A stretch of 64,000 bases of DNA from Pelomyxa schiedti (lineage: Eukaryota; Protista; Evosea). A program made the translations under genes and the position numbers. Location of the stretch: positions 1 to 64,000 of the forward strand of contig JAHLWZ010000798.1 in NCBI GenBank assembly GCA_020536535.1, in the 5' to 3' direction. The notes under the pieces were generated by a model that was not told the DNA's origin, ran no database searches, and was given only the letters and a program-made list of their open reading frames with translations. Positions 19,170 to 23,491 of the stretch are shown in pieces (position 1 is the first letter of the stretch; each line of letters begins with the position of its first letter).

Positions 19170-21477
19170 TTAGGAGAGGTTCAGGCAGTGGAACTTTAGC
19201 TTCTCCCATAGTTGTTGTTCTTCCTCATGTGTTGGTGTGGACTGCTTGTTTTTGATTTTCGCTAGTTGGTGACGGGTGAGACATGCCTCGCGGAAATGCC
19301 TCAATGAACCCGGGGCAACAGATAGCTCTGACATATCATCATTATGGGGAATAACAGTGTCCTTGACTTGGGTGTACATCCATTCCTTAGATTTCTATAA
19401 GAAACGGGTGGTTTGTAGGTAAAAAGTTTTTCTTACAGTGAGTTCTACTGCCTCCAAGAAGTTCATTGTGGGTGTTTCCCAGGCATGGAGACATCCTGTG
19501 AGGTTGTGTTTGTGTCTAAAATCCATCGAAAATGCAAGAGAGAGGGGAACAAGGCCGAATGTGAAAATCTGTCCACGTATTGTAAAGACATCAAGAAATT
19601 GGTACCAAATTACCTTGAAGAAACAGACTCCAGGACCTTCAGTGTAATAGTTATTAATCATATCAACTGTCTCTCTAACGGTTTCTCTTGTTTCACCCGG
19701 AAAACCACCTACTTGTTATTACCAAAGATTTTAAAATTAAGGCTGTATTACAAATGAAGAAACTCCTGTTGAAAATATGAGTTGTAAATAACTAAACAAC
19801 GAGAACCCACAGAGTGTTTATTCCCTTCATTGAGAGTAGTCGTAGACTATGTAATGTCTGCTCAGGGTGAGGTGGTTTTCCCATTGCTCTAAGAATATCT
19901 CTATTCCCACTTTCAACGCCAGCCCAAATTTCAATGCATCCAGACAATCTCATCCATTCAGCAAGTTCTTCATCTACAATCCACACCCTTTGGTACGCCT
20001 CGAAGGAAGGGTAATCAAAAACGGTGGGAAGGGATTGCATACTGTCCAACTAATATTCATGTTTGATTCAACAAGAGCTTTACACAGTTGAACTGCTTGC
20101 TGTTTGTTCTGAAACAAGTTATCATTTGTGAAAGCGACGTAACGCCTGCCATTTACAACTGGTATATGAGAAACTTTTTCCAAAATTTCTTCTATACTGT
20201 GATATATTGGGCTTTGGAAAAATTCCTCATAAAACATACCTGTCCACTTTGGAGGTCGGAATTACATTTCTGAATTCACCTGAATGGCTCAAATTACATG
20301 TATATAGAGTGAATGGTAACCTTACAAAATGCGCAGTTGAGGTTGCATCCATGCCCAGCATAAACAGGAAGGCAGACTGGTGGTCTATTTTGATACTCTG
20401 CCCATTCCACAAAGGGGCTTGCTATTGGTTCCTGAGCTAGTCAGAGGATACTAAAGTAGTTGGGTTGGATGTTACATCAAGAATTTGATTAATGACAAGC
20501 CCTCTATCGGATGGGTATGCAACTGAGCCCATCGAATGCCAATCGGTATGATTTTTAAGGCTCTTTTAAAGGAATTAGAATAACAGGCAGCAAAGAAGGA
20601 AAGACCTGAAGTAGGGTGAGAAGGGCACGAGTGCCCCCAGGATTAATGATGAGGGCATCTGCCAAGCAGTGGGCTTGTGGATTGAAAAAGGGTGAGTAAA
20701 CACGGCCCTCTCCTTCGCTACACATAGAGATTAGCAAACGCACAACCTCGTCAGAGTATTCACTGTTAATGTTTGTTAGGATTGACAGGGAAAGGGTAAA
20801 ATAAGATGACGAACCCAGCATCTACTGCAAGTTTAATCTTATAACTCTTCCAGACAAAAATTCCCCCCATGATAATAAAAGCAGAAGGACAAGTTTTTCG
20901 TACCTGTCTGTATGGAAGAGGTTGATGGTACTTGGACAATTACACATAATTCATACAAAGGAATGCTTACAACATTATTTCGTTGACCTGTACACAAGAA
21001 AAGTAAAATGATGTTGATATAACCACAACATTATCCCTGCCAGTCAGAAGTTCTTGCTCTAACTGCACAAATGCTTAACTTGCTTAAGCAAGGGGGAGAT
21101 AAAGCTTTGGGTACCTGTACTTGATCGTGTGGTAGATAGTTTTCAATAAGCACAACATCATAACCCTCTTGGGAAATGATCTTGTTCAAATAGGGACCAG
21201 CCAATGTTACAGGAACAGAAGGAACCCCCTTTGACATCTCTATTAATGTTCACCCTTGTATTTTACAGCCAATTACATATTTAGGACAACATCTAGGGAA
21301 AAACAAAAAAAAGGAAAGACCAACCAAATGTGGCAAGGAGTCAGCGCAACAAGAGAAATAAGCCCTGAGGAATTGCAACGATGCTATTTCACCCTCCACG
21401 GTCAGCAACCTCCTGTAATGCATGTACCCCCTCATGTGACAAGGGTCACTCATTCCACCAACCACAATCACCTTCAT
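19170..21477 (-). CDS. Cobalamin-binding-domain radical SAM enzyme (class B methyltransferase-like)
   Basis: GHGCNLNCAFC (CxxxCxxC at 20324-20347, third Cys codon split by intron 20280-20325). N-terminal B12-binding-type Rossmann motifs: VVVISTSF, RKTCPSAFIIMGG. Core motifs: FTNDNLF, SGCIEIWAGVESGNRDILRAMGK, GFPGET. Confidence 0.88.
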
Positions 21478-21663
21478 TTCTTCCCCTTTGTTCCCTTCTC
21501 GTCGGCTATTATGGGTGCTTGTCCTACTGGGTACCGCTTTCACGCCTGGGCTGCGAAAATGTCGGTTGGGGTGTGATCAAGAAACGCTTTGTGTTTTCCT
21601 TTTTTTTTTTTCTTTTTTGAACTCAAAAAGAATGATATGGAGGTGTTTCACTGGGTGGAGGAA

Positions 21664-23491
21664 CTAAAAGTCAACACCCCAGATATCATGGCAGTAGGTT
21701 TGAAATGTGCCTGTGCTTATGTGCCGTCTTATATCCTCGAAAAATCTCAGGTAATGGAAGTTGTTGTGCCTGGGATCACATTGAGTGAAATGAGTAGTAT
21801 GGTGGAGGAATTACATACAGTGAAAGCAGAATGTTGGCCAGCATCTCGTGTGTGAGGAGTAGGTGATGGACATATGCCCTTGTGTAGGTACGACAGGCAT
21901 AACAAGTGCATCCAACAACAAATGGCTGGAAATCCATGAAGTACCTTCAAATTCGTTTGATTGTTGTCAGGCTGAATACATTCCATACATGTTGTCATTC
22001 AAATTGATTTTGTGTTTATCAAGAGTCGAAGGTTTAGATGGCTCCGACGTTCCAACGTGAAATATAAGTGCGTAGCCCCAGGAGGCCATATACGATGCAT
22101 AACTAAGAGATTGAGACCAATGAAACTTCTGTCCAGCATACTTATTTGTAAATAGGTCAACGCCTCTCTGAACAAGATCCAACACTTCCTCTGAGGATGT
22201 TAAGTATTATAAATGAGACTGAAACTTATTACCGGGAATTCCAATCCCATGAATAACACGAAGACACTGAGCTGGCATCGTTTTCTAGCTTAAGTTGGTG
22301 AAAAAAGGTATTAATACATCGGTCAGAATACCACAACAACATCTACAATTTCACCACGTTGTCTGACATCCTCACCCAGACCAAGGCCAGCTATCGAATA
22401 AGCTTGTGTGAGGTTAAGGGGGAAAAATAGCAATAAAAGTAATTTCAACATACCCGGGAGATTTCTCTTGGCAACTTCAGAAGCATTTCTAATACGCGAT
22501 TGAAGATTCACTCCACCTTGAATTACACCTGACATCTAGGGAAACTCTTTATTTATGAGGTACGGTACAAAAAGCAAAGTATTACAACTGGTCCCCCTGG
22601 GCCTGTGTTCAATGCAATACATTCATCGAGCCACTTCAATCCTTTCTCATCGTTTTTCCTTTTGGTTTTCAAACTTAAGGAGGAGATTGAGAAAAGTTAC
22701 TGGCTCTTGGAAGGGCTCGAATCTAAAGTGAGGTCAACGAAGAGAGAATCCAACAAGTTGACCCCTGCTGCATGAGCTAATTCCATATAGGCAGTTGGTG
22801 TGATCTAATAGGAGTAAGTGCCCATTGTGAAGAGCAATAGGAGATATACTATTTTTCTTCCAGACTTAGTATCCAATAAAACACCTTTCGGGGAAGCACC
22901 CGTGGCCGCCAAACAAGCCGTAGTTCTTGCTGAGAGATATAACGGTGAAGAGGGCTTCAAACAAAACAGAGCACGGACTCCTCCGTTTGGTCTGCACTGT
23001 ACTGCCGAAGATGGTGTGGTGCAACTGCTAGTTGAAGCAGAATCAGCTGCAGAATCTACAGAAGAAGGGCGTCGAGTGTTGTGGATGGCCCATTGGCGGA
23101 TTGTGAGTTCGTTTTCTGCACTAACCATTGGAATCAGTGCAGTCAGAGAAAAAAGTATTTAGATACTATGGACGAGAAAGAAAAAAAAACCATACATGTC
23201 AGAAAGAGGGATCGAGAGGCACTGAGCAGGAACCCCAGAGGTAAGATCAGGCGTGAGGAATGGAATAGCACATTTCTTCGTCGAAGTGGCGACCCCAGGA
23301 GTGTCAATAAAACCCCCATCCTGTTTAATTTAATGCATTAGCTAGCGGGGAAGAAAAAAAAAAAAGAAACACCCTGGCAACAAACGAACCGAGAAAGAAA
23401 ACTTCCCAACTCTGGCCCTTGTCGACGACACATTCGGCGGTGCCGCATCCGTAGTAACCGACGACTCCGCACTGCTCTCGATCGTCAACAT
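21664..23491 (-). CDS. QTRT2: Queuine tRNA-ribosyltransferase accessory subunit (TGT family); an alternative start lies at 23578
   Basis: GVFIDTPG, GVIQGGVNLQSRIRNASEVAKR, YSIAGLGLGE, RVIHGIGIP, VLDLVQRGVDLF, and the Zn site GCTCYACRTYTRAYVHHLLLTHEMLA...HN. Confidence 0.88.

Follow-up and report, generated by a model that had tools for sequence, protein, structure and literature searches.

Can a eukaryote living without oxygen carry a working gene for a bacterial-type 'class B' radical S-adenosylmethionine (SAM) enzyme, where would such a gene come from, and what would its product do? These questions are raised by a gene located at positions 19170-21477, on the minus strand, of a 64,000-nucleotide stretch of DNA (positions 1 to 64,000 of contig JAHLWZ010000798.1, hereafter the window) from Pelomyxa schiedti. 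This free-living archamoeba is an anaerobe, as the first-pass annotation of the window had assumed for its host; its genes contain 7.43 introns on average, and its methionine synthase (MetH) depends on B12 (PMC8887013). Two reviews on cobalamin-dependent radical SAM enzymes make no mention of eukaryotes (PMC12931638, PMC9204698). The analysis presented here has led to the conclusion, to which a probability of roughly 70% is assigned, that the locus is a nuclear, functional gene of P. schiedti that encodes a two-domain class B radical SAM enzyme of bacterial type, derived from the Planctomycetes-Verrucomicrobia-Lentisphaerae (PVC) group and distantly related, as a cousin, to PhpK.

The public entry P0001, which NCBI lists as "radical SAM protein [Pelomyxa schiedti]", was threaded through the window with zero mismatches, revealing a gene of 14 exons and 13 introns with a coding sequence that runs from 21477 down to 19170, stop codon included, and a product identical to the 546 amino acids of P0001. 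This mapping returned exactly the limits proposed in the first-pass annotation, and all the motifs quoted there were present in the product. The lengths of exons 1 to 14 are 153, 114, 92, 93, 157, 87, 106, 40, 154, 188, 14, 95, 132 and 216 nucleotides (nt), and each of the 13 introns is of the GT-AG type, with sizes of 43-96 nt and mostly of 43-52 nt. When an exhaustive HMMER search was carried out with a C-terminal piece of the gene (19398-19715, minus strand), P0001 was matched at 97% identity, lacking 15 of the residues of this piece; the additional residues appear in the open frame because it includes an in-frame intron of 45 nt (19569-19613).

Splicing was analyzed in the RNA contigs of three single-cell transcriptomes obtained in the same study as the genome, with a DNA run used for comparison. 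Ten of the 13 introns were removed in the RNA contigs (CT..AC on the plus strand, equivalent to GT..AG on the gene strand), and the DNA run contained the whole stretch, unspliced and collinear with the window. Even a micro-exon of 14 nt (19752-19765) was detected in contigs X1 and X3, as 13 letters inserted between 19708 and 19810, with flanking introns of 45 and 43 nt. The 5' untranslated region extends to at least 21532, as record 4 of RNA contig X1 spans 21324-21532 and is joined to 21227. The many spliceosomal introns put forward in the first-pass annotation as an argument against contamination were confirmed in this way. Three base differences were found between RNA contigs and genome (19263, 19509 and 19887), two of them synonymous (L516 and K451) and one causing the change A370S, and they are probably due to allelic or cell-to-cell variation.

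The encoded protein displays the motif MKVIVVGG at its start, PYLNKIISQEGYDVV and VVVISTSFY in the N-terminal domain (N-domain), CNLNCAFC (CxxxCxxC), AGVESGN, GFPGET and LTGCLHAWETPTMN. Three parts are predicted from these motifs and from the structural model described below: a Rossmann domain at the N-terminus that is of the cobalamin-binding type, a barrel with the CX3CX2C motif for the [4Fe-4S] cluster and SAM, and a domain at the C-terminus whose W-x-x-x-T-M motif is specific to the PhpK-like superclade. The Pfam profile Radical_SAM (PF04055) was matched above its threshold (72.8 bits, cut-off 29.5). The CNLNCAFC motif corresponds to residues 261-268, and its cysteines C261, C265 and C268 do not vary among 29 relatives, with the aromatic residue F267 conserved in at least 90%. 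In alignments of 19-29 relatives, C261, C265, C268, G359, E361, S362, G401, P403, G404, E405, T406, W461, T465 and M466 were invariant or nearly so, and the same applies to residues G73, T106, G134, G135 and G194 of the N-domain. The spacing from the ISTS/TF segment to the GG pair is similar to that of SxL...GG in the classical B12 motif. The His-bearing DxHxxG motif appears to be lacking in P0001, as is usual for class B enzymes.

The best named family for P0001 was NCBIfam TIGR04479 (PhpK), with an E-value of 7e-53 and 179.8 bits, below the cut-off of 600. It was more than 100 bits ahead of the next radical SAM families of the B12-dependent kind (ApyD, HpnJ, ladderane-type and BchE), which scored 60-65 bits, also under their cut-offs. 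Single exon pieces gave weak matches only against Pfam and NCBIfam, the best one being PhpK with an E-value of 3e-8. The protein was not assigned to the MiaB/RimO methylthiotransferases (TIGR00089, 35.5 bits versus 251), whose second cluster requires three N-terminal cysteines, as no conserved cysteine was present in the N-domain of the alignment, nor to the AprD4 family of diol dehydratases (NF033070, 45.7 bits, cut-off 500).

A model of P0001 was predicted by AlphaFold2 with the family alignment as input, reaching a mean predicted local distance difference test (pLDDT) value of 86.9 and a predicted template modeling (pTM) score of 0.87. The model consists of an N-terminal domain with alternating strands and helices, a radical SAM barrel and a helical C-terminus. 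The top matches in a Foldseek search were MgmA (9ccb), TsrM, AprD4, OxsB, CysS and TokK, and in the VIA-align comparison the Z-scores were 21.5 for TsrM (425 residues, spanning 1-545), 21.3 for MgmA, 21.1 for AprD4, 20.8 for OxsB and 20.0 for CysS, versus 13-14 for radical SAM enzymes matching the core alone. According to this model, the N-domain is predicted to adopt the Rossmann-type fold known from radical SAM enzymes of the cobalamin class, a fold that by itself is no proof of cobalamin binding. A failure of the N-domain to fold in this way, which the first-pass annotation had named beforehand as a refutation, is thus not what the model shows.

Concerning the relatives of the gene, an orthologue with 45% identity over the whole length and the same motifs is encoded by a transcript from Mastigella eilhardi that is full-length (P0002, EukProt EP01105). 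Mastigella, likewise an archamoeba, belongs together with Pelomyxa to the Pelomyxidae. Among the matches listed in searches with P0001, P0002 and the family profile, which were word-based and not exhaustive and in the case of the profile did not recover every member of its own alignment, no other eukaryote-labelled relative besides Pelomyxa and Mastigella was found. When the C-terminal exon piece was used as query for HMMER, in the exhaustive mode, P0002 was the last full-length close relative to be gained, and a feature search of the ESM Atlas yielded bacterial clusters and one viral cluster only. In a species-level genome collection, queried with 7 of the closer sequences, about 15 full-length matches with 30-34% identity were obtained, all of them from Verrucomicrobiota, Lentisphaerota (Victivallales and Lentisphaerales), Kiritimatiellota and Planctomycetota, including Brocadiaceae. 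The metagenomic relatives P0011 (35% identity) and P0012 (31%) are located on gene-dense contigs and contain no introns.

A maximum-likelihood tree was built with 38 rows and 545 columns under the model LG+C20+F+G4, with the other Pelomyxa loci left out. Pelomyxa and Mastigella were joined with support 100/100, and this amoebal pair was placed inside a clade of 17 rows together with 15 PVC-group sequences (98/97), which in turn lay within two more inclusive clades of bacteria (98/94 and 100/99). A branch with support 100/100 separated the eight rows of the PhpK clade from the 30-row clade that holds the Pelomyxa gene. A rapid tree, to which outgroups and additional rows had been added, agreed with these placements. 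Since the amoebal pair nests inside the PVC clade, a lateral transfer from a PVC-type bacterium into the Pelomyxa/Mastigella lineage, followed by intron gain, is supported by the phylogeny, and the lateral acquisition suggested in the first-pass annotation, as well as the expectation that the gene would not group with a widespread eukaryotic family, agree with the tree and with Mastigella being the only outside eukaryotic relative found. No protein of a symbiont was present among the close relatives, and therefore the donor would be no obvious present-day symbiont. As a separate observation, a RimO protein labelled 'Syntrophus sp. SKADARSKE-3', a bacterial symbiont of the amoeba, was found among the distant matches (P0092).

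The first-pass annotation had treated the locus as a single acquired gene, which turned out to be incorrect, as it is one of at least 12 loci of the PhpK-like radical SAM family in the P. schiedti genome. The PhpK model gave 23 exon-sized matches on 12 contigs, and a tblastn search with family proteins revealed eleven loci in addition to the gene under study (C798), all with the same three-part architecture (C475, C589, C562, C252, C160, C423, C173, C694, C966, C526 and C870). These eleven loci are apparently intron-bearing, judging from genomic DNA, in which the tblastn matches fall in exon-sized pieces with stops between them. Paralogues were compared exon by exon only. Ten of them form a tight group, with summed tblastx scores of 330-1450 bits among themselves, well above those with any bacterium, and C798 and C870 stand apart from this group. 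The PVC clade provided the best bacterial match for every locus. The gene under study reached 261 bits with the PVC protein P0011 and at most 162 bits with any paralogue, and the identity of the paralogues to it is about 21-33% in the aligned pieces. It could be either an old, fast-evolving branch of the amoebal family or a separate acquisition.

The arrangement of the domains along the exons, all on the minus strand, is as follows. Exon 1 (21325-21477, 153 nt), defined by the P0001 mapping, encodes the MKVIVVGG start and the first strand of the N-domain. It is followed by an intron of 96 nt that is spliced in RNA and by exon 2 (21115-21228, 114 nt), with the segment GVPSVPVTLAGPYLNK...GYDVV. 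Exon 3 (20971-21062, 92 nt; P0001 mapping) carries VVVISTSFY at the 'SxL' position of the B12-domain motifs, and exon 4 (20815-20907, 93 nt), covered over its whole length by record 3 of RNA contig X1, carries IIMGG, with the invariant GG of the Rossmann domain. In exon 5 (20606-20762, 157 nt) an insertion shared with Mastigella precedes the GG/GE-x-x-L motif, and the introns of 52 and 43 nt at this exon are spliced. Exon 6 (20476-20562, 87 nt) is backed by the mapping and by RNA contigs.

Exon 7 (20326-20431, 106 nt) encodes CNLNCAFC, and its last base is the first one of the third cysteine codon, a junction backed by the alignment with P0002. The codon is completed in exon 8 (20240-20279, 40 nt; mapping, RNA and alignment), which continues with EFRNVIPTSKVD. 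Exon 9 (20043-20196, 154 nt) contains the FTNDNL region of the radical SAM core and exon 10 (19811-19998, 188 nt) the GVESG motif, both assigned by mapping and RNA. The micro-exon 11 (19752-19765), assigned by mapping and by contigs X1 and X3, supplies the residues LSFFI directly before the GFPGET motif of exon 12 (19614-19708, 95 nt; mapping and RNA). Exon 13 (19437-19568, 132 nt) encodes the family-specific C-terminal motif W-E-T-P-T-M, and the intron before it (19569-19613) is spliced in X1, X2 and X3. Exon 14 (19170-19385, 216 nt including the stop codon) encodes C-terminal helices, according to mapping, RNA and the structural model. Just upstream of the gene, on the same strand, an open frame at 21776-21937 may resemble the zinc-site region of queuine tRNA-ribosyltransferase.

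Several of the results weigh against the interpretation of the locus as a functional, PVC-derived enzyme of the methylase kind, and they are considered here together with the alternative explanations that they favor. Bacterial contamination could be invoked, as Pelomyxa hosts endosymbionts, both archaeal (methanogens) and bacterial (PMC10579272), and a widespread eukaryotic family inherited vertically might have escaped protein searches that were word-based. The former is excluded by the spliceosomal introns removed in RNA and by the eukaryotic neighbour genes on the 148-kb contig, and the latter is countered by the restriction to Pelomyxa and Mastigella among the eukaryote-labelled matches listed, so that both together are considered extremely improbable. 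With respect to the bacterial source, the amoebal pair is placed on a long stem of 1.5 changes per site, and the tree assigns it to the PVC clade as a whole and not to one particular sister group there. A decaying or non-productive copy, with transcripts mostly mis-spliced, would be in line with the RNA forms observed at intron 7. In the annotated model this intron (46 nt, 20280-20325, donor at 20325) splits the third cysteine codon as T|GT, but the sole spliced RNA contig over it (X2 record 6) uses a donor located 5 nt downstream (20320; AAG|GTTACC), skipping 41 nt and retaining the five bases GTAAG (20321-20325). The TGT codon is kept whole in this form, with a shift of the frame that leads to a stop six codons on (...CAFCKVNSEM*). 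A second RNA contig (20269-20348) keeps intron 7, and introns 2 and 3 lie outside the coverage of the RNA contigs. The in-frame junction is required by the open frame and by the Mastigella orthologue, which can be aligned residue for residue across it, so the annotated form, which we infer on this basis, is the most plausible one, even though the productive transcript is not directly documented at this point. The intron inside the third cysteine codon, as claimed in the first-pass annotation, thus agrees with the annotation, the open frame and the alignment, but not with the only spliced contig. The RNA forms of intron 7 may represent noisy or regulated unproductive splicing, and minor or alternative forms get lost in assembled contigs. 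As the open frame is intact over 14 exons with all catalytic motifs kept, nine other junctions, including those of the micro-exon, are spliced exactly as the open frame demands and the orthologous transcript of Mastigella is intact, with the motifs preserved, a decaying copy is regarded as very unlikely.

The chemistry of a functional enzyme is a more delicate matter. A class B fold might operate without methylase chemistry, either with no binding of cobalamin, as in AprD4 or ArsL-like enzymes, or using cobalamin for reactions other than methylation, as in BchE or OxsB. The structural match with AprD4 is as good as that with TsrM, and AprD4, which is also the top sequence match in the PDB (E-value 2e-30), has a similar Rossmann-type domain but binds no cobalamin; reviews caution that cobalamin-type domains also occur in non-binding enzymes (PMC12931638). 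In addition, the Pfam B12-binding profile (PF02310) gave 16.4 bits for P0001, under its cut-off of 32.1, and in the conserved GE-x-T-L motif the GE is changed to GT in the Pelomyxa protein. Methylation is an extrapolation because no enzyme of the clade has been characterized, and the neighbourhoods of 16 bacterial relatives contained no conserved partner, no phosphoenolpyruvate (PEP) mutase and no biosynthetic cluster, and so offer no consistent functional clue. On the other side, the score with the NCBIfam model of AprD4 is far below its cut-off, as mentioned above, residues G73, G134/G135 and G194 are invariant across the superclade, with true PhpK included, and PhpK, the closest of the named families, requires methylcobalamin for its methylation reaction (PMC9204698). 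A fold that does not work as a methylase is on balance considered unlikely, although it is the strongest of the rival readings.

Another reading, a PhpK-type P-methyltransferase with a C-P-C phosphinate as its product, within phosphonate metabolism of the amoeba, is suggested by TIGR04479 being the best family match and by the JGI label 'p-methyltransferase' of the nearest bacterial relative, P0011. The resemblance to PhpK perceived in the first-pass annotation is real in the sense that this is the nearest named family, but the protein is not a member of it: true PhpK proteins (P0021, P0039, P0020 and P0023) reach 630-666 bits on TIGR04479 versus 179.8 bits for P0001, and they form their own clade (100/100) with P0001 outside. 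The search for a phosphonate pathway that had been proposed along with this resemblance came out negative. No PEP mutase was detected in the P. schiedti genome, an absence that is not proven in a draft assembly, and no match to phosphonopyruvate decarboxylase (TIGR03297) was found in the same draft. The sole match to the PEP mutase superfamily in the genome (C792:83577-83855, equivalent to L014:1501-1779) is an exon of methylisocitrate-lyase type, with 95.8 bits for prpB versus 45.9 for PEP mutase, and none of the 16 bacterial relatives examined has a PEP mutase beside it. Since neither a phosphonate pathway nor membership of the PhpK clade was found, P-methylation of a phosphinate, the reaction of PhpK, is judged highly improbable.

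By analogy with the characterized class B methylases, the enzyme encoded at 19170-21477 may work as they do, and the balance is slightly in favor of this possibility. Cobalamin use and methyl transfer, and with them the additional B12 chemistry that the first-pass annotation had inferred, are presumed from the likeness to these enzymes. In such a mechanism, the reduced cluster would cleave SAM to give a 5'-deoxyadenosyl radical, which would abstract a hydrogen from the substrate at an unactivated atom. Methylcobalamin would then pass its methyl group to the substrate radical, and the resulting cob(I)alamin would be re-methylated by a second SAM. The cobamide could be supplied by prokaryotic endosymbionts or by prey of the amoeba. 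The target would probably be a housekeeping-type substrate: given that the genes of the bacterial relatives stand alone and do not belong to biosynthetic clusters, a conserved cellular component (lipid, protein or RNA) seems likelier than a natural product of the phosphinate type. The neighbours of these relatives included genes for a HAD hydrolase, a SAM methyltransferase, GH94, DUF2400, ParB and cytochrome c, and the sole recurrent one was a fusion of DUF116 and polyprenyl synthetase, found at three loci (L028:3794-5419, L041:3628-5382 and L026:8874-10073), two of which are close kin. In the Lentisphaerota relatives this fusion is encoded directly upstream of the gene for the radical SAM protein, and a prenyltransferase alpha-alpha-toroid protein is encoded just downstream in one of them (L041:7601-8521). 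The recurrence of the fusion gives a weak hint of isoprenoid lipids.

On a wider scale, it is tentatively proposed, with chances slightly short of even, that a class B radical SAM family of PVC type was domesticated in pelomyxid amoebae, where it grew to at least 12 nuclear loci with introns, divided among three divergent lineages, and hence that cobalamin-dependent radical methylation takes place in a eukaryote. If true, this would be a third B12 chemistry of eukaryotes beside MetH and methylmalonyl-CoA mutase, acting on cellular targets with cobamides that would come probably from the methanogen and bacterial endosymbionts, which suggests a dependence of the amoeba on symbiont cobamides. A spliced and expressed eukaryotic member of an expanded family would also widen the known range of cobalamin-dependent radical SAM chemistry. 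The transfer from bacterium to protist, in an anaerobe, would be a clear and datable one, placed before the split of Pelomyxa and Mastigella and followed by the gain of 13 introns. The analysis also defines a conserved PVC sister clade of PhpK, for which the automatic label 'P-methyltransferase' is probably wrong. The protein was already public under its generic name, and no paper discussing the gene was found in a literature search; with it, a kind of enzyme already known gains a eukaryotic member acquired by lateral transfer, which belongs to a sister clade of PhpK.

When compared to known systems, the Pelomyxa protein shares with the PhpK/BcpD P-methyltransferases, the best-scoring named family, a size of about 540 amino acids and the same three-part layout, together with the N-domain glycines, the CX3CX2C, GxESG and GFPGET motifs and the C-terminal W...TM. 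It differs from them in its identity of only 19-25%, in its position in a separate clade (100/100) and in being a eukaryotic gene with 13 introns and no phosphonate context. AprD4 (6fd2), a radical SAM diol dehydratase, is alike in structure (Z 21.1) and is the top PDB sequence match, whereas its family model gives the Pelomyxa protein 45.7 bits versus 500. The same predicted fold, a Rossmann domain plus a partial triosephosphate isomerase (TIM) barrel, is present in TsrM (6wte/6wtf), MgmA/QCMT (9ccb), OxsB (5ul3) and CysS (9n1d), with Z-scores of 20-21.5 over about 370-425 residues, but these enzymes are 14-18% identical to the Pelomyxa protein and act on unrelated substrates, and for them cobalamin binding is experimental. 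The nearest relatives are the PVC-group radical SAM proteins with a B12 domain (for example P0011, P0137 and the loci L025-L041 of Lentisphaerota, Kiritimatiellota, Verrucomicrobiota and Planctomycetota), with 30-37% identity over the full length and likewise under the PhpK cut-off (about 232 bits). They are intronless, stand-alone bacterial genes, whereas the amoebal proteins have an extra insertion at around residues 160-180 and a long stem branch.

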